Positions 45-63,418 of a stretch of DNA of 64,000 nt are shown in pieces. The position numbers and the translations under genes were made by a program. The notes below the pieces were generated by a model. It ran no database searches and was not told where the DNA came from. It saw nothing but the letters and a program-made list of their open reading frames with translations. Each line of letters starts with the position of its first letter. Position 1 is the first letter of the stretch. Where the stretch lies: assembly GCF_039654945.1 (NCBI RefSeq), contig NW_027361968.1:1984001-2048000 (forward strand). The letters are read 5' to 3'. The DNA comes from Dendrobates tinctorius. Lineage: Eukaryota.

Positions 45-3000
45 GGATGCACGTTGTGAAGATTGGGGGTCCCGTCTATAGGATTGGGGTAGGCGGTGGT
101 GCCGCATCTTCCATTCAAGTAAGTAATGATTCTAAAATGTATCGTATGCATTACAGACATTGTTTCAGATCGATACTTAGTTCTTGGGGGGTGATCAGGT
201 TCAGGGGGACAACGCCAGTGAACTGGACTTTGGGGCAGTGCAGCGAGGGGACGCGGAGATGGAGCAGAAAATGAACCGAGCTGTCCGCGCCTGTGTGGAG
301 CGAGGCGAGAGGAATCCAATCTGTAGCATTCACGACCAGGGGGCCGGTGGGAATGGTGAGCAATGGATGACTGCATTGTCACTTCTGCCCCTGTGAATCC
401 TTCTCTGGTTTTTGCCTCTGTCTTGACTTGTAGACTTCTCATCTTTGCAGGAAATGTCCTGAAGGAGCTGAGTGAGCCGCAAGGAGCCGTCATCTACACC
501 AAGAACTTTCAGGTAGGAAACCTGTGGATCTTCTGGGTGCAGGATCTCCTGGATCAGTAACGGCTCTCTGATCATCTGTCTTCCTCCAGTTAGGTGATCC
601 CACTCTGAGCGTCCTGGAGATTTGGGGGGCCGAATACCAGGAATCTAACGCTTTGCTCATCCGTCCAGAGGATGCAGAATTCCTGCAGTCCGTGTGTCGT
701 AGGGAGAGGTCTCCAGTGGATTTTGTGGGTAGAATCTCAGGAGATGGCCGGGTGAGAACCTACATCCCCCTTGAGTCAAGGATGGAGCTCCATTATATAC
801 GGAGTCGGATAATATCCCCCTAAATTAGACCAGACCTTTGTTGTCCTCATGTGCAATACTTCTGTTTTCTTGATCTTGAGGTCTTCATTGATGAGATCTA
901 TAATCTTTCTCCTGTATAGATCGTCTTAGTAAATGGGAGTGAGAACGATCCTGTGCCGGATCGCAGTGATCGTAACTGTATCCCGGTGGACCTGGAGCTG
1001 GAGTGGGTCCTGGGGAAGATGCCTCAGAAGGTAGAGAGCCTAATTCGTGTCTGGTTCCTCCAGACATGGCGACCTTGTTGTGACACTCTGGTCTTTTATT
1101 TCTCCTTTTCTATAGGAGTTTGAGCTGAGTCGCGTTCCCCCCACACTATTATCACTGACCCTCCCTGAAAATCTGAGTGTCCAGCACGCACTGGAGCGTG
1201 TCCTGAAACTGCCGTCTGTGGCTAGCAAACGATACCTGACCAACAAGGTGGATTTCATGTCCATGCTGGCACTTGTGGTGACTTCATAGCTATCCACAGT
1301 CACCTGGTAACTTCTCTCTGTCTGCAGGTGGATCGCTCGGTCACCGGTCTTGTGGCCCAGCAGCAATGTGTGGGGCCACTTCACACCCCCTTGGCAGATG
1401 TAGCTGTCATCTCGCTGTCGTACACGGACACTGTAGGTGGCGCCACAGCAATTGGGGAGCAGCCAATTAAAGGCCTCCTGGACCCGGCCGCAGGGGCCCG
1501 CATGGCGGTGGGCGAGGCTCTTACAAATCTGGTGTTTGCCTTAGTGACTGACCTAAAGGTAATTTTCCTGTGAACTTCAGGGGATTCTGGTGGTGTCATC
1601 GGTGCAGGATGTACACCGCTTTGTGTGGAGGTCTGCCATGTGTCTCAATTAAAGGGGAACCTCGGCCGTTGACCCCTGTGGTAGTGCCCGTTTTTCCAGT
1701 CTCTTGTCGGCCACCCCTCCGTACAGTCGCTCATCTCTTATTATTTTTGCAGGATGTGAAGTGTAGCGGTAACTGGATGTGGGCAGCCAAACTCCCGGGA
1801 GAAGGTGCCGCGCTGTACGATGCATGTGTGGCCATGTGTGATGTCATGGCGCATGTCGGGATCGCGGTGGATGGAGGAAAAGACTCTCTCAGTATGGCCG
1901 CCAGAGTGGGACCAGAGACTGTGAAGGCTCCAGGTGACCCATGGCCCTGTGTCCTCCCAAGGGTCCTGTCTCCATCCTCCCGGTCTCATATTGTCTCTGC
2001 TTTCTAGGGTCTCTGGTCATCTCTGTCTATGCCGTGTGCCCCGATATCTCTGCCACCGTCACACCAGACCTGAAGAACCCCGGGCAGAAGGGTAAGTGCC
2101 CCCAGTGGTCTGGCACCATGGGGCTACATACAGCAGAGGACCAGGAATAATTCTGGCCTCTTCTCTCTGCACCCCAGGCGTCCTCCTCTACGTCCCCGTC
2201 AATCCCGGGAAGCATCGTCTGGGTGGCAGCGCCCTGGCTCAGTGCTATTTACAGCTGGGAGAGCACCCGCCGGACCTGGACGACCCCCAGACCTTGGTCT
2301 CCTGCTTTAAGGTCACACAAGATCTCATCAAAGGTAAGACCATTCTGATTCACATCCAGAGCTGCGCTCTCCATTCTGCTGATTTGCTGTTGGCTCTCAG
2401 GTTGCCGGAGGCGCATGGGTTTTATTACTTGGTGACCACACACTATGGTGTAATGTGGGAGATGACCACAACTGCTACAGTCTACAGCAGAGCAAAATCT
2501 GGGCTGATGGCAGAGCGCCGGATGTAGAGCGCAGAAGTCAAGATCGCTGTGTCATCAGCAGCACAGCAGCCACCAAGATAGCAAACCTTCCTCCAGTGTG
2601 ATGTAGTGAGCTTTGTCACCTAGGTCACTCCCTGTGCGAAGACCAGCAGCCGAGATAGCAAACCTTCCACTGTGATGTAGGAGCTTTGTCACCTAGGTCA
2701 CTGCCTGTGCGAAGACCAGCAGCCGAGATAGCAAACCTTCCTCCAGTGTGATGTAGTGAGCTTTGTCATCTAGGTCACTGCCTGTGCGAAGATCAGCAGC
2801 CGAGATAGCAAACCTTCCTCCAGTGTGATGTAGTGAGCTTTGTCATCTAGGTCACTGCCTGTGCGAAGATCAGCAGCTGAGATAGCAAACCTTCCTCCAG
2901 TGTGATGTAGTGAGCTTTGTCATCCAGGTCACTGCCTGTGCGAAGATCAGCAGCCGAGATAGCAAACCTTCCAGTGTGATGTAGTGAGCTTTGTCATCTA

Positions 3001-6000
3001 GGTCACTGCCTGTGCGAAGATCAGCAGCTGAGATAGCAAACCTTCCAGTGTGATGTAGTGAGCTTTGTCACCTAGGTCACTGCCTGTGCGAAGATCAGCA
3101 GCCGAGATAGCAAACCTTCCAGTGTGATGTATTGAGCTTTGTCATCCAGGTCACTGCCTGTGCGAAGACCAGCAGCTGAGATAGCAAACCTTCCAGTGTG
3201 ATGTAGGAGCTTTGTCATCCAGGTCACTGCCTGTGCGAAGATCAGCAGCCGAGATAGCAAACCTTCCAGTGTGAGGTAGTGAGCTTTGTCATCCAGGTCA
3301 CTGCCTATGCGAAGATCAGCAGCCGACAGCAAACATTCCAGTGTGATGTAGGAGCTTTGTCATCTAGGTCACTGCCTGTGCGAAGATCAGCAGCCGACAT
3401 AGCAAACCTTCCAGTGTGATGTAGTGAGCTTTGTCATCTAGGTCACTGCCTGTACGAAGATCAGCAGCCGACATAGCAAACCTTCCAGTGTGATGTAGTG
3501 AGCTTTGTCATCTAGGTCACTGCCTGTGCGAAGATCAGCAGCCGAGATAGCAAACCTTCCAGTGTGATGTAGGAGCTTTGTCATCTAGGTCACTGCCTGT
3601 GTGAAGATCAGCAGCCGAGATAGCAAACCTTCCAGTGTGATGTAGGAGCTTTGTCATCTAGGTCACTGCCTGTGCGAAGATCAGCAGCTGAGATAGCAAA
3701 CCTTCCAGTGTGATGTAGTGAGCTTTGTCATCTAGGTCACTGCCTGTGCGAAGATCAGCAGCCGACATAGCAAACCTTCCAGTGTGATGTAGTGAGCTTT
3801 GTCATCTAGGTCACTGCCTGTGCGAAGATCAGCAGCCGAGATAGCAAACCTTCCACTGTGATGTAGTGAGCTTTGTCACCTAGGTCACTGCCTGTGCGAA
3901 GATCAGCAGCTGAGATAGCAAACCTTCCACTGCGATGTAGTGAGCTTTGTCACCTAGGTCACTGCCTGTGTGAAGATCAGCAGCCGAGATAGCAAACCTT
4001 CCAGTGTGATGTAGGAGCTTTGTCATCTAGGTCACTGCCTGTGCGAAGATCAGCAGCTGAGATAGCAAACCTTCCAGTGTGATGTAGTGAGCTTTGTCAT
4101 CCAGGTCACTGCCTGTGCGAAGATCAGCAGCCGAGATAGCAAACCTTCCAGTGTGATGTAGTGAGCTTTGTCATCCAGGTCACTGCCTGTGCGAAGACCA
4201 GCAGCTGAGATAGCAAACCTTCCAGTGTGATGTAGGAGCTTTGTCATCTAGGTCACTGCCTGTGAGAAGATCAGCAGCCGAGATAGCAAACCTTCCAGTG
4301 TGATGTAGGAGCTTTGTCATCTAGGTCACTGCCTGTGCGAAGATCAGCAGCCGAGATAGCAAACCTTCCACTGTGATGTAGTGAGCTTTGTCACCTAGGT
4401 CACTGCCTGTGCGAAGATCAGCAGCCGACATAGCAAACCTTCCAGTGTGATGTAGTGAGCTTTGTCATCTAGGTCACTGCCTGTGCGAAGATCAGCAGCT
4501 GAGATAGCAAACCTTCCAGTGTGATGTAGTGAGCTTTGTCATCTAGGTCACTGCCTGTGCGAAGATCAGCAGCCGACATAGCAAACCTTCCAGTGTGATG
4601 TAGGAGCTTTGTCATCTAGGTCACTGCCTGTGCGAAGATCAGCAGCCGACATAGCAAACCTTCCAGTGTGATGTAGGAGCTTTGTCATCTAGGTCACTGC
4701 CTGTGCGAAGATCAGCAGCTGAGATAGCAAACCTTCCAGTGTGATGTAGTGAGCTTTGTCATCTAGGTCACTGCCTGTGCGAAGATCAGCAGCCGAGATA
4801 GCAAACCTTCCAGTGTGATGTAGTGACTTTTGTCATCCAGGTCACTGCCTGTGTGAAGATCAGCAGCCGAGATAGCAAACCTTCCAATGTGATGTAGTGA
4901 GCTTTGCCTGTGCGAAGATCAGCAGCTGAAGATGAGCTGCTCACGACTGCTGCACTCTGCATAGGCAGCCGTCTAGCTGTCCAGTGCTGCACTGCTCTCT
5001 TCTACCACTCCACATCTCTTCACTCACTCTTTCTTATAAGTTGACCTTTTTCTAAGTTTTTACATATTTTTCTTAACCCTGAGGGCCAGGGCTACAGCTA
5101 GGGACCGTGTGAGCTTTAGGGATAGGGGGAGGTTTAGGGATAGGGGAGGTTTGGGGCTGGAGTTATAAAATGGTTACATAAAGTCTGTAACAATGTATCA
5201 ATTCATTTTTGACACTTTATAGGTAACAACCGCGGAATGCGGGGAGGGCAGGACTACTGCACACTACATCTCCCACATTACACAGCCGCAGAACATGGGC
5301 CGGCGCTGAACCTGCAGGATGTCTGATGGTCTCGGTGCCTTTTCTGTGTTTCGGTACTTTGCACGCTATTTTAACCCTTCCTCTGCCTCCTCTCATCCGC
5401 AGAGCGTGCGCTGAGCGCGGGGCACGACGTCAGTGATGGCGGCCTGATTACGTGCCTCCTGGAGATGGTGTTCGCTGGTAACTGCGGGCTGGACGTGGAG
5501 TTCTCCGCCCCAGACGTCAGCGGTGAGTCTCTGCGCAGCTTCTCGCGGATGATGGTCGGCGTCTGGATGTCTTAACGCCTCCTTCCTCTTCCTCAGCTCT
5601 GGACCTGCTCTTCTCGGAGGAGCTGGGGATTGTTCTGGAGGTCTCGGAGGCGGCACATGAGCGAGTCATCCAGCAGTACCGAGCTGCGGGGCTGCAGTGC
5701 GTGACGCTGGGACGGACGCAGGGAAGGGGCCCGAGCTCTCCGGTATGTCCCATCATGGGTAACATGAACCCTGAAGTTATAAAAGGTACAGGACGTGCGC
5801 TGGAGACGCCTGTGCTCACCCGTGTCCCCTGTGCTCACCCGTGTCCCCTGTGCTCACCCGTGTCCCCTGTGCTCACCCGTGTCCCCTGTGCTGCTGTTTA
5901 TGTATTTGCATTAATTTGCATTTCTCCTTCCATTGTCCCCGCCTCTTAAAGGAGACCTTTTCTTTTTAAATCTCTAGGTCAGAGTCTGTGTCAATGGGGA

Positions 6001-9000
6001 GGAGGTCCTGTGCGATGACGTGGGGACGCTGCGGGCGCGGTGGGAGGAGACAAGTTTCCAGTTGGAGCGATTGCAGGCGAACCCCGGTTGTGTGACCCAG
6101 GAGGAGGCAGGGCTTCTTAAGAGGGAGGGGCCAAACTACCAGCTGACGTTCGATCCATCACAGAAGCCGGCTGTGATAGGTGCAGTAGTGATGGATGGTG
6201 GTGGTGATACGGGAGGGTGTGGGGTGACTGTGTAACTGGGCACGTCTCTCGCCCTCGCAGGTTCGGCTCAGCCGTGTGTCGCTGTTGTACGTGAAGAGGG
6301 CAGTAACGGCGACAGAGAGATGGCGGCCGCGCTGCTGATGGCCGGGTTTGAGGTAATGCATTGTACTGTACGTCCATAATATTACATTATTACATGCCCT
6401 ATGGCGTTACTCCAGTCACATCACAAGCTGCAGAACAAGCTCTACTGACTCTCAGGATCTTCTCATTCCCCTCCATTGTACGGCCACCACTTCTCCCATC
6501 AGACTCTCTGCTTCTCATCAGGTCTGGGATGTCACCATGGAAGATCTTCTGTCCGGAGGAGCAACGCTGGATATTTTTAGGGGTCTGATATTTGTTGGAG
6601 GATTCAGCTATGCAGATGTTCTAGGGTCTGCGAAAGGCAAGTGACCAACGGGATGTAGAAACCTACACAGTGAGAGTAGTACTGACAAAATACTGCCCCC
6701 TACAGACCGGAGCTAATATTATGTATAAGGGCAGTATTATAAAAGTTATATTCTTGTACATAGGGGCAGTATTATAATAGTTATATTCTTGTACATAGGG
6801 GCAGTATTATAATAGTTATATTCTTGTACATAGGGTCAGTATTATAGTAGATATATTATTGTACACAGGAGCAGTATTATAGTAGTTATATTCTTGTACA
6901 TAGGGAGCAGTAGTATAGTAGTTATATTCTTGTACATAGGGGGCAGTATTATAATAGTTATATTCTTGTACATAGGGGCAGTATTATAGTAGTTATATTC
7001 TTGTACATAGGGGGCAGTATTATAATAGTTATATTCTTGTACATAGGGGCAGTATTATAGTAGTTGTATTCTTGTACATAGGAGCAGTATTATATTAGTT
7101 ATATTCTTATACATAGGGGCAGTATTATAGTAGTTATATTCTTGTACATAGGGAGCAGTAGTATAGTAGTTATATTCTTGTACATAGGAGCAGTATTATA
7201 GTAGTTATATTCTTGTACACAGGAGCAGTATTATAGTCGTTATATTCTTGTACATAGGAGCAGTATTATAGTAGTTATATTCTTGTACATAGGGGCAGTA
7301 TTATAGTAGTTATATTCTTGTACATAGGGGCAGTATTATAGTAGTTATATTCTTGTACATAGGGGCAGTATTATAGTAGCTATATTCTTGTACATAGGGG
7401 CAGTATTATAGTAGTTATATTCTTGTACATAGGGGCAGTATTATAGTAGTTATATTCTTGTACATAGGGGCAGTATTATAGTAGTTATATTCTTGTACAT
7501 AGGGGCAGTATTATAGTAATTATATTCTTGTACATAGGGGCAGTATTATAGTAGTTATATTCTTGTACATAGGGGGCAGTATTATAATAGTTATATTCTT
7601 GTACATAGGGGCAGTATTATAGTAGTTATATTCTTATACATAGGGAGCAGTATTATAGTAATTATATTCTTGTACATAGGGGCAGTATTATAGTAGTTAT
7701 ATTCTTGTACATAGGGGGCAGTATTATAATAGTTATATTCTTGTACATAGGGGCAGTATTATAGTAGTTGTATTCTTGTACATAGGAGCAGTATTATATT
7801 AGTTATATTCTTATACATAGGGGCAGTATTATAGTAGTTATATTCTTGTACATAGGGAGCAGTAGTATAGTAGTTATATTCTTGTACATAGGAGCAGTAT
7901 TATAGTAGTTATATTCTTGTACACAGGAGCAGTATTATAGTCGTTATATTCTTGTACATAGGAGCAGTATTATAGTAGTTATATTCTTGTACATAGGGGC
8001 AGTATTATAGTAGTTATATTCTTGTACATAGGGGCAGTATTATAGTAGTTATATTCTTGTACATAGAGGCAGTATTATAGTAGTTATATTCTTGTACATA
8101 GGGGCAGTATTATAGTAGCTATATTCTTGTACATAGGGGCAGTATTATAGTAGTTATATTCTTGTACATAGGGGCAGTATTATAGTAGTTATATTCTTGT
8201 ACATAGGGGCAGTATTATAGTAGTTATATTCTTGTACATAGGGGCAGTATTATAGTAGTTATATTCTTGTACATAGGGGCAGTATTATAGTAGTTATATT
8301 CTTGTACATAGGGGCAGTATTATAGTAGTTATATTCTTGTACTTAGGGGCAGTATTATAGTAGTTATATTCTTGTACATAGGGGCAGTATTATAGTAGTT
8401 ATATTCTTATACATAGGGGCAGTATTATAGTAGTTATATTCTTATACATAGGGGCAGTATTATAGTAGTTATATTCTTGTATATAAGGAGCAGTATTATA
8501 GTAGTTATATTCTTGTACATAGGAGCAGTATTATAGTAGTTACATTCCTGTACATAAGGGGCAGTATTATAGTAGTTATATTCTTATACATAGGGGCAGT
8601 ATTATAGTAGTTATATTCTTGTATATAAGGAGCAGTATTATAGTAGTTATATTCTTGTACATAGGAGCAGTATTATAGTAGTCATATTATTGTACATAGG
8701 GGCAGTATTATAGTAGTTATATTCTTGTACATAGGGAGCAGTAGTATAGTAGTTATATTCTTGTACATAGGAGCAGTATTATAGTAGTTATATTCTTGTA
8801 TATAGGAGCAGTATTATAGTAGTTATATTCTTGCACACAGGAGCAGTATTATATGAGTTATATTCTTGTACATCGGGGGCAGTATTATAGTAATTATATT
8901 CTTGTACATAGGAGCAGTATTATAGTAGTTATATTCTTGGACATAGGGGCAGTATTATAGTAGTTATATTCTTGTACATAGGAGCAGTATTATAGTAGTT

Positions 9001-12000
9001 ATATTCTTGTACATAGGGGCAGTATTATAGTAATTATATTCTTGTACATAGGAGCAGTATTATAGTAATTATATTCTTGCACATAGGGGGCAGTATTATA
9101 GTAGTTATATTCTTGTACATAGGAGCAGTATTATAGTAGTTATATTCTTGTACATAGGGGCAGTATTATAGTAGTCATATTCTTGCGCATAGGGGCAGTA
9201 TTATAGTAGTTATATTCTTGTACATAGGAGGCAGTATTATAGTAGTTATATTCTTGTACATAGAAGCAGTATTATATGAGTTATATTCTTGTACATCGGG
9301 GGCAGTATTATAGTAATTATATTCTTGTACATAGGAGCAGTATTATAGTAGTTATATTCTTGGACATAGGGGCAGTATTATAGTAGTTATATTCTTGTAC
9401 ATAGGAGCAGTATTATAGTAGTTATATTCTTGTACATCGGGGGCAGTATTATAGTAATTATATTCTTGTACATAGGAGCAGTATTATAGTAGTTATATTC
9501 TTGCACATAGGGGGCAGTATTATAGTAGTTATATTCTTGTACATAGGAGCAGTATTATAGTAGTTATATTCTTGTACATAGGGGCAGTATTATAGTAGTC
9601 ATATTCTTGCGCATAGGGGCAGTATTATAGTAGTTATATTCTTGTACATAGGAGGCAGTATTATAGTAGTTATATTCTTGTATATAAGGAGCAGTATTAT
9701 AGTAGTTATATTCTTGTACATAGGAGCAGTATTATAGTAGTTATATTCTTGTATATAGGGGCAGTATTATAGTAGTTATATTCTTGTACATAGGAGCAGT
9801 ATTATAGTAGTTATATTCATGTACATAGGAGCAGTATTATAGTAGTTATATTCTTGTATATAGGGGCAGTATTATAGTAGTTATATTCTTGTATATAGGG
9901 GCAGTATTATAGTAGTTATATTCTTGTATATAGGGGCAGTATTATAGTAGTTATATTCTTGTACATAGGAGCAGTATTATAGTAGTTATATTCTTGTATA
10001 TAGGGGCAGTATTATAGTAGTTATATTCTTGTACATAGGAGCACTATTATAGTAGTTATATTCTTGTACATAGGAGGCAGTATTATAGTAGTTATATTCT
10101 TGCACACAGGAGGCAGTATTATAGTAGTTATATTCTTGTACATATGGGCAGTATTATAGTAGTTATATTCTTGTACATGGGGGGCAGTATTATAGTAGTT
10201 ATATTGTTGTACATAGGAGCAGTATTATAGTAGTTATATTCTTGTACATAGGGGCAGTATTATACTAGTTATATTCTTGTACATACGGGCAGTATTATAG
10301 TAGTTATATTCTTGTACATAGGAGCAGTATTATAGTAGTTATATTCTTGTACATAGGGGCAGTATTATAGTAGTTATATTCTTGCACACAGGAGGCAGTA
10401 TTATAGTAGTTATATTCTTGTACATATGGGCAGTATTATAGTAGTTATATTCTTGTACATAGGGGCAGTATTATAGTAGTTATATTCTTGTACATAGGGG
10501 CAGCATTATAGTAGTTATATTCTTGTACATAGGGGCAGTATTATACTAGTTATATTCTTGTACATAGGGGGCGGTATTATAGTAGTTATATTCTTGTACA
10601 AAGGGGGCAGTATTATACTAGTTATATTCTTGTACATACGGGCAGTATTATAGTAGTTATATTCTTGTACATAGGAGCAGTATTATAGTAGTTATATTCT
10701 TGTACATAGGGGCAGTATTATAGTAGTTATATTCTTGTACATAGGGGCAGCATTATAGTAGTTATATTCTTGTACATAGGGGCAGTATTATAGTAGTTAT
10801 ATTCGTGTACATAGGAGCAGTATTATAGTAGTTATATTCTTGTACATAGGGGCAGTATTATAGTAGTTATATTCTTGTACATAGGGGCAGTATTATAGTA
10901 GTTATATTCTTCTACATGGGGGGCAGTATTATAGTAGTTATATTCTTGTACATAGGGGCAGTATTATAGTAGTTATATTCTTGTACATAGGGGCAGTATT
11001 ATAGTAGTTATATTCTTGTACATAGGGGCAATTTTTATTGTAAAAACAAAACAAATACAAATAACATTCCTCCAATAATACAAAACTGAATTCACTAGGA
11101 TTGTACATACATTCATTACATATCCAGTTTATACATATCAAATTAACTTAGAGTCCATACTCCTAGTTTGAGGAGAGAAAAAAAAAAAACAAAAAAAAAA
11201 ACTTGCAAACAGAGCTCATCATGTTCCTACCCAGTGACTCATCTTTCCATATCTTAACATTTCCTAATTTCTCCTAATGATTTTCCTATCTGAGTTTGGA
11301 CATTATCTGGTTGACAGCGTCACAGATCTGAGTCGGAGTTATTCTGTTCACCACCGGTCTCCATCTCAGACTCTACCCGAGTGCCCTCAGGTAAGGGCTT
11401 CCGCTTTGGCGGAGGACAGTCCTCTACGTCCCTATCACACTCTGCGTCAATTCTGTTAAGGTCATCTTCAAATTCGCCGTCAGACTCAGACAGAACATCA
11501 AACCTGTTAGATACGACCATTACACCTGCAGAGCTCTGGAATTTCTTCCCGGCTCCTTGGCCAGTGTCATACCCCTCAGGTTTACGGGAGGCCTTGTCCT
11601 TTTTCTTCCTTTTCTGATTATTGCTATACTCGTCAGACACGGATGGTAGCACTGAAGTAATGCCTTCCTGTGACCGCTGCCCCTGAGGTACAACCTCCAT
11701 ACTCCCCTGTTCTCTCTCTGAACCCTGCTGCTCTGGTGTTAGCTGAGTAGACCCCTGGTGGACCTCTGGTCTGGTCAGTATTTCCCCTGACAGTAAAGCT
11801 GCCTCCTCCAGAATCTCTGCCCCTGCCACCAAGTCCTCGTCAGGAAAGTCCTTACAGATATTGTGCCAGGCGTCTGGACAGTCCCTGTGAGGGTGACCGA
11901 TCTTCCCACAGAGGTTGCACCTGATGTTCTGGCAGTCTGCAGCTAGATGGCCGACCTCCCCACACAGGCTGCACTTCACCACAGTACAGGTATTCAGGTG

Positions 12001-15000
12001 ACCTGCCTTGCCACATTTAAAGCACTTACGAGGCTGCCCAGGATAGAAACACACACCCCTCTCCCTCCCAATAAAGAAGGAGTTGGGTAAATGGGCAGTG
12101 ATGTTATTGCATTGGCGCAGTTTCACCAAAACCCGCCACCCTCCCGTCCAGATCCCATCACTGTCTCTGCTTTTGGTGAGGTCAGAGACCAGGTCACAAT
12201 GCCTCCGGAGCCACACCACAATGTCCTGCGGGGGAACAGCCTCATTCCAGAAGATGACATTTACAGTGACAGTATCTGGCTTAGAGATAGGAATAAAGCT
12301 GAACTTACTCCAGCCCTCCGAGTCTCTAAACTTGGGGAAACTAGACCAGAATCTGTCCAGGTCAGGCATGAGCTTAAAGCTGACATCATAGCCCTGCCTG
12401 TCTGGAAGATTAATCACTGCCAGGATGCTGACTGGCACAAACCCCATCTGGTGGCACAAGAGCTCCCTGACGACAAACCTCCTGTCCGGCAGATCCTCCT
12501 TGGCACCTCTGTGCCGGAAACGCACAACGTTTCTCCGTTTAAACGCCTGGCCTGTATAATTGGAACCAGAGGTAAAGGACGGAGCACCACGACTCCAGGC
12601 ATTACTGGGGGGACCTTGCGGGGTCACATTGGGTTGACTGACGGGGTGAAGGTCTGCAGCAGGAGGGGCAGCCACACCTTGTGTTCTTGAAATTAAAGGT
12701 GGGAAATCACAGACATTATCATGCACATTGTTATCATCAGCATCAATGTCATTATCAGACTGTGCAGCGTCCACCAAATATACTGTGCTCCCCCAAGCCC
12801 CCGACCCCCCAGATACAGTGCGGTTATCCCCAGCATCAGAGCCCTGCTGGGCACCATCAGTAATGACCGGCACATGTCCACTGCCCAACTGTTGTGCTTG
12901 GCATTCTGAGACTTGTAGTCCCTCTGCTGGAAAGTGCAGTCCATGCTGCTGCTTGGAATCTGCTGCAGGCTGCTGTGCTGGGCATTCTGAGACTTGTGGT
13001 ACACCTGCTGGAATCTGCATAACATGCTGCTGCTTGGGGTCTGCCGCAGACTGCTGCGGCTGCAGTATTTGACCCTTTTGGAAGCAGAAACTTGCTGGCT
13101 GCAGCACTGGCCGCACCGGCTTCTGGGGCCCACCTGGGACAATGTCTGTGCTGGAACCTGCAGAGTCCTGCTTGTGTGACATAAACAGTTCCTGGTTCCT
13201 ATAAGTCTCTGCCAGGGGCCCCATCTTCTCTAGGACACAGTCCATGTCCGTCACCACTTTTGCCAGCTGTATACCAAGCATGTTCAGAGTCTGATCACAA
13301 AAGGTGTGATCCCCACCAGGATTAGCAGCCTTTACCTTATAGCCCATGTCTATCTGTTTCTGCAGCAAGTCTTTGTGCTGCTGTAACTCACCGAGCCTCT
13401 TGACCAGTCCTGGGATCTCCTCTGCGACCTGAAGCTCAGGTGCACATGGCGTCTCCTCCTGGGATCCTGCCTTCAGCAATGTCCCTGGATGCTTGAAACC
13501 AGACGTCTCCTTAACTTTCACCACCGCTGGTTTCGTGGTTCCAGGCTCCACAGCACTTTTACTGCTGCCACCTGACTGCGACCTTGTGCGCCCAGAGCTC
13601 GCCATGCTGGCCACCACATGCTTCTGCTGCAGGTTCTCCTGGAGCGTCTGTCTCTCCAGTGAGGTTCTCCTCTGTCTGCTGGGAGTCAGCTGCACACCTG
13701 AAGATGGTGATGGCACCTCCTGAGCTGCAGGCTGCTTTCCTCCATTCAGCTTCTCACCAGTAGATTTCTTCTGGATTTCTCCTAGTTGTCCTTCACTCTG
13801 TTTGCCTTGGCTGGCCGACTGCTTAACTGGAACTTTCTTACCCACAGCCATGGCTTTTCCTTGTTCCGTTACTTTTTGCACTTTCACAGCTTCATTATTC
13901 CTGCTGCTGCTGCTACTTCCATTCTGAGCTTTCTTTCCCTCAGAAACAACTTTGGGACTTGCATCCGCCTTAGACACAACTTGAGTGTTACGTCCAAGTG
14001 TAGGCCTGGAAGCCTGGGCCTTGCTTGGGGAGTTACCCCGCCCAGGGTGGCCTCCCCCTGGGCTTGATCCAGACATCAGGAGAGCTACAAACACACAACC
14101 TCACAGCTAGGAGGCAGTATTATAGTAGTTATATTCTTGTATATAGGAGCAGTATTATAGAAGTTATATTCTTGTATATAGGAACAGTATTATAGTAGTT
14201 ATATTCTTGTATATAGGAACAGTATTATAGGAGTTATATTCTTGTACATAGGGGGCAGTATTATAGGAGTTATATTCTTGTACATAGGAGGCAGTATTAT
14301 AGTAGTTATATTCTTGTACATAGGGGCAGTATTATAGTAATTTATATTCTTGTACATAGGGGCAGTATTATAGTAGTTATATTCTTGTACATAGGGGCAG
14401 TATTATAGTAGTTATATTCTTGTACATAGGGGGCAGTATTATAGTAGTTATATTCTTGTACATAGGAGGCAGTATTATAGTAGTTATATTCTTGTACATA
14501 GGAGGCAGTATTATAGTAGTTATATTCTTGTACATAGGGACAGTTTTATAGTAGTTATATTCTTGTACATAGGGGTAGTATTATAGTAGTTATATTCTTG
14601 TACATAGGGGGCAGTATTATAGTAGTTGTATTCCTGTATATAGGGACAGTATTATAGTAGTTATATTCTTGTACATAGGGGCAATATTATAGTAGTTATA
14701 TTCTTGTACATAGGAGGCAGTATTATAGTAGTTATATTCTTGTACATAGGGGCAGTATTATAGTAGTTATATTCTTGTACATAGGGGCAGTATTATATTA
14801 GTTATATTCTTGTACATAGGGGGCGGTATTATAGTAGTTATATTCTTGTACATAGGGACAGTATTATAGTAGTTATATTCTTGTACATAGGGGCAGTGTT
14901 ATAGTAGTTATATTCTTGTACATAGGGGCAGTATTATATTAGTTATATTCTTGTACATAGGGGGCAGTATTATAGTAGTTATATTCTTGTACATAGGGAC

Positions 15001-16630
15001 AGTATTATAGTAGTTATATTCTTGTACATAGGGACAGTATTATAGTAGTTATATTCTTGTACATAGGGGCAGTGTTATAGTAGTTATATTCTTGTACATA
15101 GGGGGCAGTATTATAGTAGTTATATTCTTGTACATAGGGGCAGTATTATAGTAGTTATATTCTTGTACATAGGGGCAGTATTATATTAGTTATATTCTTG
15201 TACATAGGGGGCAGTATTATAGTAGTTATATTCTTGTACATAGGGGCAGTATTATAGTAGTTGTATTCCTGTATATAGGGGCAGTATTATAGTAGTTATA
15301 TTCTTGTACATAGGGGCAATATTATAGTAGTTATATTCTTGTACATAGGAGGCAGTATTATAGTAGTTATATTCTTGTACATAGGAGGCAGTATTATAGT
15401 AGTTATATTCTTGTACATAGGGACAGTATTATAGTAGTTATATTCTTGTACATAGGGGCAGTATTATAGTAGTTATATTCTTGTACATAGGGGGCAGTAT
15501 TATAGTAGTTATATTCTTGTACATAGGGGGCAGTATTATAGTAGTTATATCCTTGTACATAGGGGCAGTATTATAGTAGTTATTTTCTTGTATATAGGAG
15601 CAGTATTATAGTAGTTATATTCTTGTACGTAGGGGCAGTATTATAGTAGTTATATTCTTGTACATAGGGGGCGGTATTATAGTAGTTATATTCTTGCACA
15701 TAGGGGCGGTATTATAGTAGTTATATTCTTGCACATAGGGGCGGTATTATAGTAGTTATATCCTGGTCTTTCTTATGTCTCTGTGCTTCCTATCTGCTGT
15801 AGGTTGGGCGGCATCTGTCATGTATAACTCTGGTGTCCGGGATCAGTTTGATGCTTTCCGCCTTCGTTCTGACACATTCAGTCTAGGTATCTGTAATGGC
15901 TGCCAGCTGATGGCGCTGCTGGGTTGGGTAGGAGCGGAGGCCCCGGTTGGTCCAGGTTAGTGACCCGCACATTTTTTTTTTTGTGGGGGGGGCTTTTGTA
16001 TGTTCTTCTCTTCTCACTTTTTGTCCTTCTGACAGGGGAGCGTTCCACACTGGGCGTCCTGCTGAGCCACAACCTGTCCGGAAGGTTTGAGTCTCGCTTT
16101 GTGACTGTTAAGATTGAAGAGAGTCCCTGTGTCCTGCTGCAGGGGATGGCGGGGTCATCGATCGGGGTTTGGGTGGCACATGGAGAAGGTAAGTGTCTCC
16201 TGGTGACTTCTGACCTTCGTAGAGGTGAAGTCTATGAAGAAAGGATCTGCCGGTTGTCGGGGTTTTGTATTGGTTGTCACCCGGTTTGACCGTTCACCTC
16301 CGTCCTCCAGGTCTTATGAGATTCCGGTCTGAGAAGGTTCGCGACCACTTGACCTCTCATCATTTGGCTCCTCTGCGCTACGTGAATGACCAGAATGTCG
16401 CCACGGAGGAGTACCCCATGAATCCTAACGGCTCCCCGCTCGGGATCGCCGGCCTCTGCTCGGAGGATGGACGCCACCTGGCGATGATGCCGCACCCTGA
16501 GCGCTGCGTCCTGAAGTGGCAGTGGCCCTGGATGCCGGAGGACTGGAGGACGACACTGGACGCCTCTCCCTGGATGCGCCTCTTCCATAATGGTTACAGC
16601 TGGTGCCTGAAGAGCACGATGGAGGACTGA
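45..16630 (+). CDS. PFAS: Phosphoribosylformylglycinamidine synthase (FGAM synthase), 3' 18 coding exons; 5' part lies upstream of the window
   Basis: Exons 45-118, 199-355, 451-512, 590-751, 920-1030, 1116-1247, 1328-1558, 1753-1933, 2008-2091, 2178-2333, 5403-5522, 5597-5742, 5978-6179, 6261-6352, 6522-6636, 15803-15955, 16036-16188 and 16311-16630 join in consistent phase. PurL motifs present: [73 protein letters not shown], glutaminase GICNGCQL and MMPHPER. Confidence 0.97.
2566..4928. repeat. Tandem repeat, ~74-bp unit (73-77), ~32 copies, in a PFAS intron
   Basis: Unit CAGCAGCCGAGATAGCAAACCTTCCAGTGTGATGTAGTGAGCTTTGTCATCTAGGTCACTGCCTGTGCGAAGAT. Confidence 0.95.
5809..5893. repeat. Short 19-bp minisatellite, ~4 copies
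   Basis: CCTGTGCTCACCCGTGTCC repeated. Confidence 0.85.
6716..11030. repeat. 35/36-bp satellite, left block, in the PFAS GC-AG intron
   Basis: Unit GGGGCAGTATTATAGTAGTTATATTCTTGTACATA, ~120 copies. Confidence 0.97.
11031..14107 (-). mobile_element. ORF1-only non-LTR retroelement (L1/Tx1-clade-derived, HAL1-like architecture) or ZCCHC3-like retrocopy, ~3.08 kb
   Basis: Sharp boundaries with the 35-bp satellite on both sides. ~30-nt 5' leader, one long ORF, then a ~290-nt T-rich 3' UTR ending in AATAAA (plus-strand TTTATT at 11034-11039). No endonuclease or RT ORF. Confidence 0.75.
11320..14076 (-). CDS. ZCCHC3-like / Tx1-type ORF1 protein, 918 aa from the first ATG (14076): low-complexity N-terminus, coiled coil, RRM-like region, three CCHC zinc knuckles, acidic/basic tail
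   Basis: Uninterrupted intronless ORF. Motifs [57 protein letters not shown]. Knuckles [41 protein letters not shown]. Confidence 0.85.
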   Translation of the reverse strand: MSGSSPGGGHPGRGNSPSKAQASRPTLGRNTQVVSKADASPKVVSEGKKAQNGSSSSSRNNEAVKVQKVTEQGKAMAVGKKVPVKQSASQGKQSEGQLGEIQKKSTGEKLNGGKQPAAQEVPSPSSGVQLTPSRQRRTSLERQTLQENLQQKHVVASMASSGRTRSQSGGSSKSAVEPGTTKPAVVKVKETSGFKHPGTLLKAGSQEETPCAPELQVAEEIPGLVKRLGELQQHKDLLQKQIDMGYKVKAANPGGDHTFCDQTLNMLGIQLAKVVTDMDCVLEKMGPLAETYRNQELFMSHKQDSAGSSTDIVPGGPQKPVRPVLQPASFCFQKGQILQPQQSAADPKQQHVMQIPAGVPQVSECPAQQPAADSKQQHGLHFPAEGLQVSECQAQQLGSGHVPVITDGAQQGSDAGDNRTVSGGSGAWGSTVYLVDAAQSDNDIDADDNNVHDNVCDFPPLISRTQGVAAPPAADLHPVSQPNVTPQGPPSNAWSRGAPSFTSGSNYTGQAFKRRNVVRFRHRGAKEDLPDRRFVVRELLCHQMGFVPVSILAVINLPDRQGYDVSFKLMPDLDRFWSSFPKFRDSEGWSKFSFIPISKPDTVTVNVIFWNEAVPPQDIVVWLRRHCDLVSDLTKSRDSDGIWTGGWRVLVKLRQCNNITAHLPNSFFIGRERGVCFYPGQPRKCFKCGKAGHLNTCTVVKCSLCGEVGHLAADCQNIRCNLCGKIGHPHRDCPDAWHNICKDFPDEDLVAGAEILEEAALLSGEILTRPEVHQGSTQLTPEQQGSEREQGSMEVVPQGQRSQEGITSVLPSVSDEYSNNQKRKKKDKASRKPEGYDTGQGAGKKFQSSAGVMVVSNRFDVLSESDGEFEDDLNRIDAECDRDVEDCPPPKRKPLPEGTRVESEMETGGEQNNSDSDL
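14108..15762. repeat. 35/36-bp satellite, right block
   Basis: Same unit and orientation as 6716-11030; ends ~40 nt before the PFAS acceptor at 15802. Confidence 0.97.
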
Positions 16631-16745: not shown

Positions 16746-16837
16746 TGTCAGCAGTCATCGCTCAATGCCAGGAGCATTCATTAAAGCCACAACACCGTGC
16801 CTACATGTCTTTCTCCTGGGTTCCACTGTCATGAAAT

Positions 16838-19800
16838 ATACTCCAGAGCTGCACTCACTATTCTGCTGGTGCAGTCACCATGTACATACATTACATTACT
16901 GATCCTGAGTTACATCCTGTATTATTCTCCAGAGCTGCACTCACTATTCTGCTGGTGCAGTCACTGTGTACACACATTACATTACTGATCCTGAGTTACA
17001 TCCTGTATTATACCCCAGAGCTGCACTCACTATTCTGCTGGTGCAGTCACTGTGTACATACATTACTGATCCTGAGTTACATCCTGTACTATACCCCAGA
17101 GCTGCACTCACTATTCTGCTGGTGCAGTCACTGTGTACATACATTACATTACTGATCCTGAGTTACATCTTGTATTATACTCCAGAGCTGCACTCACTAT
17201 TCTGTTGGTGCGGTCACTGTGTACATACATTACATTACTGATCCTGAGTTACATCCTGTATTATACTCCAGAGCTGCACTCACTATTCTGTTGGTGCGGT
17301 CACTGTGTACATACATTACATTACTGATCCTGAGTTACATCCTGTATTATACCCCAGAGCTGCACTCACTATTCTGCTGGTGCAGTCACTGTGTACATAC
17401 ATTACATTACTGATCCTGAGTTACATCCTGTATTATACTCCAGAGCTGCACTCACTATTCTGCTGGTACAGTCACTGTGTACATTACGTTACTGATCCTG
17501 AGTTACATCCTGTATTATACTCCAGAGCTGCACTCACTATTCTGCTGGTGCAGTCACTGTGTACATACATTACATAACTGATCCTGAGTTACATCTTGTA
17601 TTATACTCCAGAGCTGCACTCACTATTCTGTTGGTGCGGTCACTGTGTACATACATTACATTACTGATCCTGAGTTACATCCTGTATTATACTCCAGAGC
17701 TGCACTCACTATTCTGCTGGTACAGTCACTGTGTACATACATTACATTACTGATCCTGATTTACCTCCTGTATTATACTCCAGAGCTGCTCTCACTATTC
17801 TGCTGGTACAGTCACTGTGTACATACATTACTGATCCTGAGTTACCTCCTGTATTATACCCCAGAGCTGCACTCACTATTCTGCTGGTGCAGTCACTGTG
17901 TACATACATTACATTACTGAGCCTGAGTTACATCCTGTATTATACCCCAGAGCTGCACTCGCTATTCTGCTGGTGCAGTCACTGTGTACATACATTACAT
18001 TACTGATCCTGAGTTACCTCCTGTATTATACTCCAGAGCTGCTCTCACTATTCTGCTGGTACAGTCACTGTGTACATACATTACTGATCCTGAGTTACCT
18101 CCTGTATTATACCCCAGAGCTGCACTCACTATTCTGCTGGTGCAGTCACTGTGTACATACATTACATTACTGATTCATCCTGAGTTACCTCCTGTATTAT
18201 ACCCCAGAGCTGCACTCACTATTCTGCTGGTGCAGTCACTGTATACATACATTACTGATCCTGAGTTACATCCTGTATTATACTCCAGAGCTGCGCTCAC
18301 TATTCTGCTGGTGCAGTCACTGTGTACATACATTACATTACTGATACATCCTGAGTTACATCCTGTATTATACTCTAGAGCTGCACTCACTATTCTGCTG
18401 GTGCAGTCACTGTGTACATACATTACATTACTGATCCTGAGTTACCTCCTGTATTATACCCCAGAGCTGCACTCACTATTCTGCTGGTGCAGTCACTGTG
18501 TACATACATTACATTACTGATCCTGAGTTACCTCCTGTATTATACCCCAGAGCTGCACTCACTATTCTGCTGGTGCAGTCACTGTATACATACATTACTG
18601 ATCCTGAGTTACATCCTGTATTATACTCCAGAGCTGCGCTCACTATTCTGCTGGTGCAGTCACTGTGTACATACATTACATTACTGATACATCCTGAGTT
18701 ACATCCTGTATTATACTCTAGAGCTGCACTCACTATTCTGCTGGTGCAGTCACTGTGTACATACATTACATTACTGATCCTGAGTTACCTCCTGTATTAT
18801 ACCCCAGAGCTGCACTCACTATTCTGCTGGTGCAGTCACTGTGTACATACATTACATTACTGAGCCTGAGTTACATTCTGTATTATACCCCAGAGCTGCA
18901 CTCGCTATTCTGCTGATGCAGTCACTGTGTACATACATTACATTACTGATCCTGAGTTACCTCCTGTATTATACTCCAGAGCTGCTCTCACTATTCTGCT
19001 GGTACAGTCACTGTGTACATACATTACATTACTGATCCTGAGTTACATCCTGTATTATACTCCAGAGCTGCGCTCACTATTCTGCTGATGCATCACTGTG
19101 TACATACATTACATTACTGATCCATCCTGAGTTACCTCCTGTATTATACCCCAGAGCTGCACTCACTATTCTGCTGATGCAGTCACTGTGTACATACATT
19201 ACATTACTGATACATCCTGAGTTACATCCTGTATTATACTCTAGAGCTGCACTCACTATTCTGCTGGTGCAGTCACTGTGTACATACATTACATTACTGA
19301 TCCTGAGTTACATCCTGTATTATACTCCAGAGCTGCACTCACTATTCTGCTGGTGCAGTCACTGTATACATACATTACATTACTGATCCTGAGTTACATC
19401 CTGTATTATACTCCAGAGCTGCACTCACTATTCTGCTGGTGCGGTCACTGTGTACATACATTACATTACTGATCCTGAGTTACCTCCTGTATTATAGTCC
19501 AGAGCTGCACTCACTATTCTGCTGGTGCAGTCACTGTGTACATACATTACATTACTGATCCTGAGTTACATCCTCTATTATACCCCAGAGCTGCACTCAC
19601 TATTCTGCTGGTGCAGTCACTGTGTACATACATTACATTACTGATCCTGAGTTACATCCTGTATTATACCCCAGAGCTGCACTCACTATTCTGCTGGTGC
19701 AGTCACTGTGTACATACATTACATTACTGATCCTGAGTTACATCCTGTATTATACTCCAGAGCTGCAGTCACTATTCTGCTGGTGCAGTCACTGTGTACA

Positions 19801-20571
19801 TACATTACATTACTGATCCTGAGTTACATCCTGTATTATACTCCAGAGCTGCACTCACTATTCTGCTGGTGCAGTCACTGTGTACATACATTACTGATCC
19901 TGAGTTACATCCTGTATTATACTCCAGAGCTGCAGTCACTATTCTGCTGGTGCAGTCACTGTGTACATACATTACATTACTGATCCTGAGTTACATCCTG
20001 TATTATACTCCAGAGCTGCAGTCACTATTCTGCTGGTGCAGTCACTGTGTACATACATTACATTACTGATCCTGAATTACATCCTGTATTATACTCCAGA
20101 GCTGCACTCACTATTCTGCTGGTGCAGTCACTGTGTACATACATTACATTACTGATCCTGAGTTACATCCTGTATTATACTCCAGAGCTGCAGTCACTAT
20201 TCTGCTGGTTCAGTCACTGTGTACATACATTACATTACTGATCCTGAATTACATCCTGTATTATACTCCAGAGCTGCACTCACTATTCTGCTGGTGCAGT
20301 CACTGTGTACATACATTACATTACTGATCCTGAGTTACATCCTGTATTATACTCCAGAGCTGCACTCACTATTCTGCTGGTTCAGTCACTGTGTACATAC
20401 ATTACATTACTGATCCTGAATTACATCCTGTATTATACTCCAGAGCTGCAGTCACTATTCTGCTGGTGCAGTCACTGTGTACATACATTACATTACTGAT
20501 CCTGAATTACATCCTGTATTATACTCCAGAGCTGCACTCACTATTCTGCTGGTGCAGTCACTGTGTACATA
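16838..20571. repeat. 86-bp satellite (81/86/90-bp variants), ~43 copies; a partial unit resumes at 22194-22245
   Basis: Unit CCAGAGCTGCACTCACTATTCTGCTGGTGCAGTCACTGTGTACATACATTACATTACTGATCCTGAGTTACATCCTGTATTATACT. Confidence 0.97.
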
Positions 20572-22193
20572 CAGTGCCTTGTGAAAGTATTCAACCCCCT
20601 AGAACTTTTCAGCCTTTTCCCACATATCATGCTTCACACATAAAGATACCAAATATAAATTTTTGGTGAAGAATCAACCACAAGTGGGACACAATTGTGA
20701 AGTTGAGTGAAATTTATTGGTTATTTTAAATTTTTGTGGAAATTCAAAAACTGAAAAGTGGAGCGTGCAATATTATTCAGCCCCTTTACTTTCAGTGCAG
20801 CAAACTCACTCCAGAAGTTCATTGTGGATCTGTGAATGATCTAATATTGTCCTAAATGACTAATGATGATAAATATAATCCACCTGTGTGTAATCAAGTC
20901 TCCGTATAAATGCCCCTGCTCAGTGATAGTCTCAGGGTTCTGTCTCATGCACAGAGATCATCATGAAGACCAAGGAACACAACAGGCAGGTCCGTGATAC
21001 CGTTGTGGAGAAGTTTAAAGCCGGATTTGGATACAAAATGATTTCCAAAACTTTAAACATCCCAAGGAGCACTGTGCAAGCGATCATATTGAAATGGAAG
21101 GAGAATCATACCACTGCAAATCTACCAAGACCCGGCCGTCCCTCTAAACTTTCATCTCAAACAAGGAGAAGACTGATCAGAGATGCAGCCAAGAGGCCCA
21201 TGATCACTCTGGATGAACTGCAGAGATCTACAGCTGAGGTGGGACAGTCTGTCCATAGGACAACAATCAGTCGTACACTGCACAAATCTGGCCTTTATGG
21301 AAGAGTGGCGAGAAGAAAGCCACTTATCAAAGATATCCATAAAAAGTGTCGTTTAAAGTTTGCAACAAGCCACCTGGGAGACACCAAACATGTGGGAGAA
21401 GGTGCTCTGGTCAGACGAAACCAAAATCAAACTTTTTGGCAACAATGCCAAACGATATGTTTGACGTAAAGGCGACACAGCTCATCACCCTGAACACACC
21501 ATCCCCACTGTCAGACATGGTGGTGGCAGCATCATGGTTTGGGCCTGCTTTTCTTCAGCAGGGACAGGGAAGATGGATAAAATTGATGGGAAGATGGATG
21601 GAGCCAAATACAGGACCATTCTAGAAGAAAACCTGTTGGAGTCTGCAAAAGACCGGAGACTGGGACGGAGATTTGTCTTCCAACAAGACAATGATCCCAA
21701 ACATAAAGCAAAATCTACAATGGAATGGTTCACAAATAAACGTCACCAGGTGTTAGAATGGCCAAGTCACAGTCCAGACCTGAATCCAACCGAGAATCTG
21801 TGGAAAGAGCTGAAAACTGCTGTTCACAAACGATCTCCATCCAACCTCACTGAGCGCGAGCTGTTTGCCAAGGAAGAATGGGCGAGAATTTCAGTCTCTC
21901 GATGTACAAAACAGATAGAGACATACCCCAAGAGACTGCAGCTGTAATCGCAGCAAAAGGAGGCGCAACAAAGTATTAAAGGGGCTGAATAATATTGCAC
22001 GCCCCACTTTTCAATGTTTGAATTTCCACAAAGATGTAAAATAACCAATAAATTTCCTCCAACTTCACAATTGTGTCCCACTTGTTGTTGATTCTTCACC
22101 AAAAATTTACATTTGGTATCTTTATGTTTGAAGCATGATATGTGGGAAAAGGCTGAAAAGTTCCAAGGGGATGAATACTTTTGCAAGTCCCTG
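20572..22193 (+). mobile_element. Full-length Tc1-family DNA transposon with ~200-bp TIRs; transposase (20963-~21977) frameshifted
   Basis: Ends TA|CAGTGCCTTGTGAAAGTATTC ... GAATACTTTTGCAAGTCCCTG|TA. Paired-like HTH with GRP motif, LWSDETK, FQQDNDPKH, WPSHSPDLNPTENLW. Frameshift near 21385 and an in-frame TGA near 21463. Confidence 0.95.
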
Positions 22194-39474: not shown

Positions 39475-39505
39475 GGGTTAGGGTTAGGGTTAGGGTTAGG
39501 GTTAG
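39475..39505 (+). repeat. Interstitial telomere-like repeat (GGGTTA)5
   Basis: GGGTTAGGGTTAGGGTTAGGGTTAGGGTTAG. Confidence 0.85.
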
Positions 39506-39983: not shown

Positions 39984-42270
<2,287 letters not shown>

Positions 42271-50150: not shown

Positions 50151-50737
50151 TTACGTGATGAGTTCTGCAGCAGCTGTGAGATCGTCCAACGTTCTGTCCA
50201 CCAGAAGGTCGGGACGGCAATGATGGTCTTCATGTGTCCTGGCTGGACTCCTACACAAGCTCTACCCCTATCAGCCCTTGAACCTCTGCGATTTACAGCT
50301 TTCTAGAGCCAGTGAGATCTACACACCCACTTTATAGCTTCCATGCATAATTCACATCTAGCTTCTATTAATTGAATGCAAACCTGACAATTCACCCAAA
50401 TCCTGCACAAGACAAAACTGCCTATGTGGCACATACAAGACCAATATATTCAGTGGTCTTTTCCTTCTTCCTATGAATTCTGGCAGCACTATAGGTACAG
50501 AGACTTTCTTTCCCTCACTTCCCAGTATGCATTTCTCCTACCATTGCCAAATGATTTGCCTGCTCTGAACTGAAAGCCGAAGAGACAAACCATCTACCTC
50601 ATTCCTATAGAAAAAAAGACAATCATTTATTTCCTGAAGAGAACCCCCCACTTCCTGTGGAGAGACAAAGACCCACCACACCTTCCTTTGCAGTGACAAA
50701 TACCCGCCTCCACTTCATGAGGAGAGGAAAAGACCCG

Positions 50738-54828: not shown

Positions 54829-63418
<8,590 letters not shown>

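Follow-up and report, generated by a model that had tools for sequence, protein, structure and literature searches.

We analysed a 64,000-nt stretch of the Dendrobates tinctorius genome (contig NW_027361968.1, positions 1,984,001 to 2,048,000; hereafter the window), in which an array of a 35-bp satellite is interrupted by a unit on the minus strand (14107..11031). The unit encodes a protein of the type specified by the first open reading frame (ORF1) of LINEs (long interspersed nuclear elements) and lacks the second (ORF2), and it probably belongs to a lineage derived by deletion from a satellite-specific LINE. A preliminary description, made from the letters of the window, had noted an element of about 3.08 kb with a leader of some 30 nt, a stop-free frame of 918 aa and a T-rich 3' untranslated region (UTR) of about 290 nt, which we measure as 3,077 nt, 31 nt, 918 aa and 289 nt. 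ORF1 begins with an ATG at 14076 and ends with a TGA at 11322..11320, with no internal stop. The first bases of the leader are the same in every ORF1-only and full-length relative whose 5' end is intact, and the 14107 end is evidently that of a full-length LINE, not a truncation. At the other end, the tail finishes with AATAAAAAT (..ACAATAAAAAT), passes straight onto satellite and carries no poly(A) tail; the AATAAA reported at this junction is present at 11039..11034, 3 nt short of the satellite.

No endonuclease or reverse transcriptase (RT) coding sequence was found in the unit or adjoining it, the satellite flanking it directly at both ends, in agreement with the earlier statement that there is no ORF2. 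Self-BLAST revealed no second copy elsewhere in the window, Rfam gave zero matches in the window, and an exact look-up did not find the protein of this copy among annotated protein records. The features of the unit and the related loci are listed in Table 1.

Table 1. Features of the ORF1-only unit and its satellite surroundings in the window, and related elements at other loci (TRF, Tandem Repeats Finder; pLDDT, predicted local distance difference test; RRM, RNA recognition motif).
Feature	Position	Strand	Description and evidence
35-bp satellite, downstream of element (element orientation)	6725..11030	.	122 copies, 93% matches; TRF
3' UTR	11031..11319	-	289 nt, T runs; aligned with 3' ends of five full-length elements
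Terminal ~30 nt	11031..11060	-	ends (A)ATAAAAAT, contains AATAAA (11034-11039); near invariant in 10 aligned 3' ends
ORF1	11320..14076	-	918 codons + TGA; Type-I-like LINE ORF1 protein, ZCCHC3 domain family
Three CCHC zinc knuckles, C685..C733	11878..12024	-	Pfam zf-CCHC
RNA-binding domain 2, RRM-like, aa 607-678	12043..12258	-	Pfam PF23058 RBD_ZCCHC3_2nd, E 3e-29
RNA-binding domain 1, RRM-like, aa 515-592	12301..12534	-	Pfam PF23057 RBD_ZCCHC3_1st, E 1e-22
81-bp tandem duplication (27 aa, 2.2 copies) in disordered linker	12881..13056	-	TRF, self-BLAST
Predicted helical hairpin or coiled-coil segment, aa 214-303	13168..13437	-	AlphaFold2 helices 214-251, 258-293, 295-303, pLDDT 80-93
First 30 codons, synonymous change suppressed	13987..14076	-	third-position identity 0.84
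5' UTR (leader)	14077..14107	-	31 nt, starts GCTGTGAGG; first bases common to all relatives with intact 5' end
Junction nonamer TGCCTCCTA	14108..14116	-	abuts element upstream
35-bp satellite, upstream of element	14108..15761	.	47 copies, 94% matches; TRF
L001a, Dendrobates tinctorius, ORF1-only copy	L001 9970-13058		97.6% identical to window
L002, L009, L010, Phyllobates terribilis, complete ORF1-only copies			2.96-2.98 kb; three contigs/chromosomes
L008, Ranitomeya imitator			87% identical over 3' two-thirds; same tail and end
L005, Anomaloglossus baeobatrachus, ORF1-only form	L005 9449-12601		other breakpoints, 5' end disrupted
L001b, Dendrobates tinctorius, second element of L001	L001 14557-20919		6.4 kb, both ORFs broken
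L003, Rhinoderma darwinii, full-length copy			ORF2 split into three frames
L004, Phyllobates terribilis, full-length copy			one stop in ORF2
L006, Leptodactylus fuscus, intact full-length			ORF1 1,029 aa, ORF2 1,135 aa
L007, Hyla sarda, intact full-length			ORF1 961 aa, ORF2 1,130 aa

The parent LINE and the deletion that removed ORF2

Relatives of the unit were located through annotated homologous proteins. Those of full length carry an ORF1 with ZCCHC3-type RNA-binding domains (RBDs) and CCHC knuckles, followed directly by an ORF2 with Exo_endo_phos, RVT_1 and zf-RVT domains. The autonomous-type partner for which the preliminary description proposed a search is found among them, with the same 5' end and insertion site as the unit and a homologous 3' end. 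In Dendrobates, L001b starts 1.5 kb downstream of the ORF1-only copy L001a; its ORF1 is about 70% identical in DNA to the window, and an ORF2 with endonuclease and RT motifs lies behind it. The ATG of ORF2 overlaps the TGA of ORF1 as ATGA in full-length copies (L004 12229-12240; L006 13084-13092; L007 12688-12699), an arrangement that suggests translation of ORF2 by termination-reinitiation. The nearest matches to the ORF2 RT are unnamed Xenopus tropicalis RT proteins (52-56% identity). Traits of the Tx1 clade are present, namely an apurinic/apyrimidinic (APE)-type endonuclease and RT in the full-length relatives and target-specific insertion; the Tx1 label itself is putative for this element, homology and Atlas searches having given unnamed RT proteins only.

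By alignment, the 289-nt tail of the unit corresponds to the last ~30 codons of ORF2 plus the 3' UTR in full-length elements, and the two sides of the deletion meet immediately behind the ORF1 stop (TGA/(C)GCTGTCA, the slash marking the junction). We therefore regard the unit as an internal-deletion derivative that lacks almost exactly ORF2. The alignments show that one internal deletion began at the start codon of ORF2 and stopped about 30 codons short of its end, and that the 5' end of the LINE, the whole of ORF1 and the 3' end were kept. The junction is identical in the window, L001a (Dendrobates) and L002 (Phyllobates); L009 and L010, also from Phyllobates, align with the window element end to end, and ORF2 adjoins none of L001a, L002, L008, L009 or L010. 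A one-off deletion, an explanation raised in the preliminary description, is contradicted by these other complete copies with the identical deletion. By inspection there is no GT..AG at the inferred breakpoints, and splicing is thus not indicated as the origin of the deletion.

The ORF1-only form in Anomaloglossus baeobatrachus (L005) has a different structure. It still has the first ~70 nt of ORF2, resumes ~170 nt before the 3' end of the element, and in the ORF1 tree falls in another lineage than the Dendrobates and Phyllobates ORF1-only copies. These differing breakpoints and the separate lineage point to at least two origins of the ORF1-only form. The 90%-identity protein cluster to which L005 belongs has 18 annotated members on at least 8 chromosome-scale contigs.

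A single satellite position and the dispersal of copies

We inspected 11 intact 5' junctions and 12 3' junctions from seven species, and every one of them falls at the same position of the 35/36-bp satellite unit. The 5' junction reads ..AATAC TGCCTCCTA/GCTGTGAGG and the 3' junction ..TAATAAAAAT/TGCCCCTAT, with satellite position and junctions identical in ORF1-only copies and full-length elements; full-length insertions at this position are present in Dendrobates, Phyllobates, Rhinoderma, Leptodactylus and Hyla. By these junctions, insertion is specific to one site of the 35-bp satellite. The nonamer TGCCTCCTA that abuts the element upstream occurs at nine of the 11 5' junctions and differs by 1 nt at the other two. 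Of 1,529 satellite units only 3.1% are of this variant, so that its enrichment at junctions is strong (P about 1.5e-12), and the unit that follows the 3' end is usually the common variant TGCCCCTA. The nonamer reads as a target-site duplication but, being rare among units yet present at most 5' junctions, it seems to be passed on along with the element and not to be a simple duplicate of each target; it could be carried along, for example, by co-transcription of upstream target sequence. In Hyla sarda (L007 16273-16310) two full-length elements stand head to tail with TGCCTCCTA alone between them, which suggests that elements have inserted anew into the target duplicated when an earlier copy arrived.

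The satellite unit itself, TGCCCCTATGTACAAGAATATAACTACTATAATAC, is almost unchanged in Dendrobates, Phyllobates, Ranitomeya, Anomaloglossus, Rhinoderma, Leptodactylus and Hyla. A satellite so nearly unchanged across frog families is unusual, and its conservation may be tied to the life cycle of the element.

Five complete ORF1-only copies (the window, L001a, L002, L009 and L010) lie on different contigs or chromosomes, the window and L001a being separate loci, and none of the ORF1-only copies has introns. Six further copies, distributed over different contigs or chromosomes of Dendrobates tinctorius, Phyllobates terribilis and Ranitomeya imitator, have the tail and 3' end of the unit, and the four complete ones among them have exactly its deletion junction. 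The protein closest to that of the window is the 97%-identical, 920-aa product of L001. The Ranitomeya copy has its N-terminal part broken by an insertion of ~1.7 kb. The five complete copies are 98.0-98.2% identical when compared inside one species and 84.6-85.1% identical when the two species are compared. No unique flanking sequence is common to the window and L001 or L002. Over 350 nt of satellite flank the five copies are 0.92-0.96 identical, which falls among the values for randomly chosen pairs of in-phase satellite (mean 0.88, maximum 0.97), and copies of one species have flanks no more alike than copies of different species. By their flanks, the copies do not resemble segmental duplicates.

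A maximum-likelihood tree built from 18 ORF1 proteins places the Dendrobates and Phyllobates ORF1-only copies together in one clade (support 100/100). Two lineages that each include full-length elements fall outside it, both represented in Phyllobates and one in Dendrobates. The clustering of copies by species at 98% identity, with the species 15% apart, points to turnover of copies within each species and not to orthology. On these identities the lineage is old (three dendrobatid genera, ~85% identity) and the individual copies are young (98%). The proposal of a young non-autonomous family that supplies its own ORF1 protein (ORF1p) is thus upheld as to the family, which has copies with the same deletion at unrelated loci, and needs amendment as to its youth, which is a property of the copies and not of the lineage.

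The ORF1 protein, selection and candidate cis signals

The RRM-like regions and triple CCHC knuckles recognised in the preliminary description correspond to ZCCHC3-type RBDs and zf-CCHC matches in Pfam. Their order (PF23057, PF23058, CCHC knuckles) is that of the ZCCHC3 family, as had been proposed, and Transposase_22 was not found. The knuckle cysteines and histidines are unvarying in 30 homologues. Folded alone, both RBDs are predicted to form beta-alpha-beta-beta-alpha-beta units, for which solved RRMs and proteins with tandem RRMs are the closest structural matches (Z 6.5-8.6, root-mean-square deviation (rmsd) 2-3.5 A, 70-80 residues; Foldseek probability 0.99-1.0); domain 1 by itself matches RRMs at Z 7-8.6 with rmsd 2-3.5 A over 70-80 residues. 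A sequence search of the PDB gave matches to the knuckles only (retroviral nucleocapsid and Air2).

AlphaFold2, run on ORF1p with a 30-sequence alignment, predicts that aa 1-212 (S/G/K-rich, net charge +19) and aa 304-513 are disordered, and that an acidic, disordered C-terminal tail follows the knuckles. Between the first two disordered regions is a confidently predicted helical hairpin, in keeping with the N-terminal coiled coil suggested earlier. The internal duplication noted in the same description is accounted for by the 81-bp tandem repeat, and an in-frame indel of 81 nt separates Phyllobates from Dendrobates copies.

The window ORF had been described as intact. It is stop-free, but it carries a private in-frame deletion of one codon in knuckle 1, between 11995 and 11994 (11992-11997), and the spacing is CX2CX4HX3C, compared with CX2CX4HX4C in eight of eight other copies compared. 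The codon is present at this place (11994) in contigs from three public runs. Because its first knuckle is altered, the window copy is more likely a daughter than a master copy.

We calculated the ratio of nonsynonymous to synonymous substitution rates (dN/dS) among copies, a check suggested at the outset. Over the whole of ORF1 it is 0.27-0.30 between species (dS about 0.37, P about 1e-22), and 0.30 for the window copy against the Phyllobates ORF1-only copies. The core of RBDs and knuckles gives 0.06-0.07 between species, on a level with the 0.07-0.09 obtained between full-length elements. Within species the ratio is more relaxed (0.41-0.60), as expected for daughter copies. The coding indels, 11-13 in number, are all multiples of three, whereas those in the UTRs are of 1, 3, 7, 1, 1, 3, 15, 2 and 10 nt. 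Since the deletion junction is common to Dendrobates and Phyllobates, the divergence between them arose after ORF2 was lost, and the substitution and indel patterns give a clear signature of purifying selection on ORF1 after that loss.

Two regions are candidates for signals acting in cis. Third-position identity in the first 30 codons (mean of 20 pairs) exceeds that of the other 30-codon blocks, in which it is 0.42-0.76 (0.42-0.69 where well covered), and BLASTN holds nt 1-116 and 1-210 in alignment with relatives whose ORF1 proteins are only ~52-54% identical. This suggests a signal at the nucleotide level, and makes the leader plus the first 30 codons (13987-14107) a candidate cis element that might act, for example, as an internal promoter or in 5' integration. 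The nearly invariant terminal ~30 nt is a candidate for the end at which the ORF2 protein (ORF2p) recognises the RNA and priming occurs; over the last 150 nt, RNAalifold did not predict any conserved pairing.

Elsewhere, the window is a mosaic of unrelated satellites; with the 35-bp arrays counted in, satellite DNA occupies about 39% of the 64 kb. The unrelated satellites are located at 2576-4906 (74 bp), 16837-20573 (86 bp), 22955-24366 (26/227 bp), 25018-26928 (51 bp), 35059-37160 (86 bp), 41333-42269 (42 bp), 50651-51149 (31 bp), 52722-53549 (31 bp) and 57638-62886 (61 bp), the 86-bp satellite being present twice. A long ORF at 25039-27063 is a read-through of the 51-bp repeat. A 672-aa ORF on the plus strand (27910-29928) matches RVT_1 (E 3e-35) and represents another retroelement, unrelated to the ORF1-only unit, and a short interstitial telomere-like repeat, (AGGGTT)x5.3, lies at 39474-39505.

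Origin and propagation of the ORF1-only lineage

We consider it probable, at roughly 0.8, that the unit is a copy of an ORF1-only, non-autonomous, HAL1-like derivative of a site-specific LINE of hyloid frogs. Comparison of the loci shows, at the level of sequence, that the deleted form has spread to several of them, always at the same satellite position, and that it has persisted with a constrained ORF1 in at least three dendrobatid genera (Dendrobates, Phyllobates and Ranitomeya). A plausible life cycle would begin with transcription from the conserved 5' end or from the surrounding satellite. ORF1p, with its basic disordered N-terminus, coiled coil, two RRM-like domains, knuckles and acidic tail, would bind its own RNA in cis. 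With AATAAA only 3 nt from the end of the element, cleavage and polyadenylation would fall in the downstream satellite and yield an RNA with a target-matching tail. The ORF2p of a full-length relative would then recognise the invariant ~30-nt 3' end and nick the satellite at AATAC/TGCC, and the RNA would be copied by target-primed reverse transcription. Selection on ORF1 would reflect a need for ORF1p in cis during propagation, as proposed for mammalian HAL1. The earlier suggestion of a non-autonomous family that keeps its own ORF1p and borrows ORF2p is supported on every point examined, trans-mobilisation itself being presumed.

Several considerations weigh against this interpretation. Location of the copies via annotated proteins biases the sample toward intact ORFs. 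There is no intact ORF2 among the Dendrobates loci sampled, L001b being broken and L011 truncated. Homogenisation of the satellite or segmental spread could imitate some of the signs of transposition, and purifying selection is equally expected of a gene recruited by the host. In public reads, parts of the element are present in 20 runs from 9 studies as contig pieces of 60-640 nt, the depth of which is not readable as copy number, and none of the 20 runs is recorded as RNA. Joints in public contigs that skip ~3086 nt were considered as empty sites and rejected, as they are satellite-to-satellite matches.

A different view of the constraint on ORF1 is that the copies are a host gene family, in which a recruited ZCCHC3-like gene with a cellular role in RNA sensing or LINE restriction is now copied solely through duplication of DNA inside satellite arrays. 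The ORFs are intact in all complete copies sampled, NCBI annotation calls copies protein-coding genes, and mammalian ZCCHC3 restricts LINE-1 (PMC10351740, PMC9580041). Against this, all complete copies have full LINE termini, the exact insertion site of the LINE and the junction nonamer; the Phyllobates copies lie on three contigs, and the lack of a unique flank common to the window and L001 or L002 does not fit DNA-level duplication. Copies that group by species at 98%, with species 15% apart, indicate turnover instead of orthology, decayed copies are present (L008 is interrupted and L005 disrupted at its 5' end), introns are absent, and the relaxed within-species dN/dS is that expected of transposon daughter copies. 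We regard a host gene family as quite unlikely. An intermediate condition has slightly more to recommend it and is still unlikely. The ORF1-only lineage would then not simply parasitise its parent LINE but be a ZCCHC3-like gene that propagates itself, partway from transposon to host gene; its ORF1p would compete with or repress autonomous elements at the satellite target, in likeness to the restriction of LINE-1 by mammalian ZCCHC3, and the lineage would exemplify the intermediates that gave rise to ZCCHC3 itself by recruitment.

That the unit is instead a dead deletion product, with an ORF open by chance and copies made by segmental duplication of satellite and insert together, could draw on the amplification of satellites by unequal exchange, on the ascertainment of copies through intact ORFs, and on the damaged first knuckle of the window copy. 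It is strongly disfavoured by the between-species dN/dS accumulated over a dS of about 0.37, by coding indels that all preserve the frame while UTR indels do not, by a shared junction that places these differences after the deletion, and by flanks with no shared duplication signal. Least credible of all is a processed retrocopy, made from the spliced mRNA of a ZCCHC3-like host gene and inserted in the satellite by chance, an origin that the preliminary description had also considered. The absence of introns and the AATAAA close to the 3' end are as such an origin predicts, but there is no poly(A) tail, both termini and the insertion site equal those of the full-length LINE, the end of ORF2 lies inside the tail, and the same structure recurs at several loci.

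The ORF1-only, HAL1-like derivative that we favour has its closest counterpart in HAL1, a non-autonomous L1 derivative that encodes ORF1p only and has several origins in mammals (PMC5753468), and for which mobilisation by L1 is described as likely (PMC4161310). In both systems ORF1 is kept and ORF2 lost, with the ORF2p of the parent presumed to act in trans (PMC5753468, PMC4161310), and both arose more than once, here through two deletions (Dendrobatidae and Anomaloglossus). They differ in that the parent of the frog element is not a mammalian L1, its ORF1p has two ZCCHC3-type RRM-like domains and three knuckles in place of Transposase_22, insertion is strictly satellite-specific with no poly(A) tail, and in the frog lineage selection on ORF1 is shown here to have acted across genera. 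In how it works the unit is like HAL1, but it does not belong to HAL1, because its type of ORF1p differs and its host is a frog. L1TD1 of eutherians is likewise an ORF1-derived coding sequence living without ORF2 (PMC4161310); it comes from a Type II ORF1 and has become fixed as a syntenic host gene, whereas the frog unit keeps its transposon termini and turns over between species.

We know of no ORF1-only derivative of a Tx1-clade target-specific LINE, and found none in the literature searched. Tx1-clade elements are target-specific, and tandem insertions that sandwich a duplicated target are known among them (PMC4494074); ORF1 proteins with RRM and CCHC domains occur in amphibian and fish L1/Tx1 groups (PMC5203782). 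The frog LINE resembles the Tx1-clade LINEs (Tx1L in Tx1D of Xenopus, Keno, Kibi) in having an ORF2 with APE endonuclease and RT and a large CCHC ORF1, and in using an exact site in a repeated target, with tandem insertions separated by a short duplicated target (PMC4494074, PMC5203782); it differs in that the target is a 35-bp satellite. The domain set PF23057, PF23058 and CCHC is shared with vertebrate ZCCHC3, a cGAS/RIG-I co-sensor that restricts human LINE-1, and a cluster named ZCCHC3 is among those nearest to the ORF1p of the element in the ESM Atlas. The ZCCHC3 gene is a single-copy host locus encoding about 400 aa, in contrast to a multicopy ORF1p of 880-920 aa with an N-terminal extension and a coiled coil. 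Multiple copies, LINE termini, a LINE target site and clustering by species are not those of a ZCCHC3 orthologue, and the ORF1p is homologous, not orthologous, to ZCCHC3. As judged from their domain content, the intact autonomous LINEs L006 and L007 show directly that the Pfam families named after ZCCHC3 (PF23057 and PF23058) are those of a LINE ORF1p; no paper in the literature searched mentions ZCCHC3 and Tx1 together.

ORF1-only half-LINEs have been known from mammalian L1, and the reason for keeping ORF1 and the role of its protein in cis are standing questions. The copies described here show that the half-LINE solution evolved at least two times in a very different LINE, with an RRM and zinc-knuckle ORF1p and strict satellite targeting. 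Because every insertion enters one known 35-bp target, the system would provide a clean assay for the cis requirement for ORF1p, for trans-mobilisation and for endonuclease specificity.

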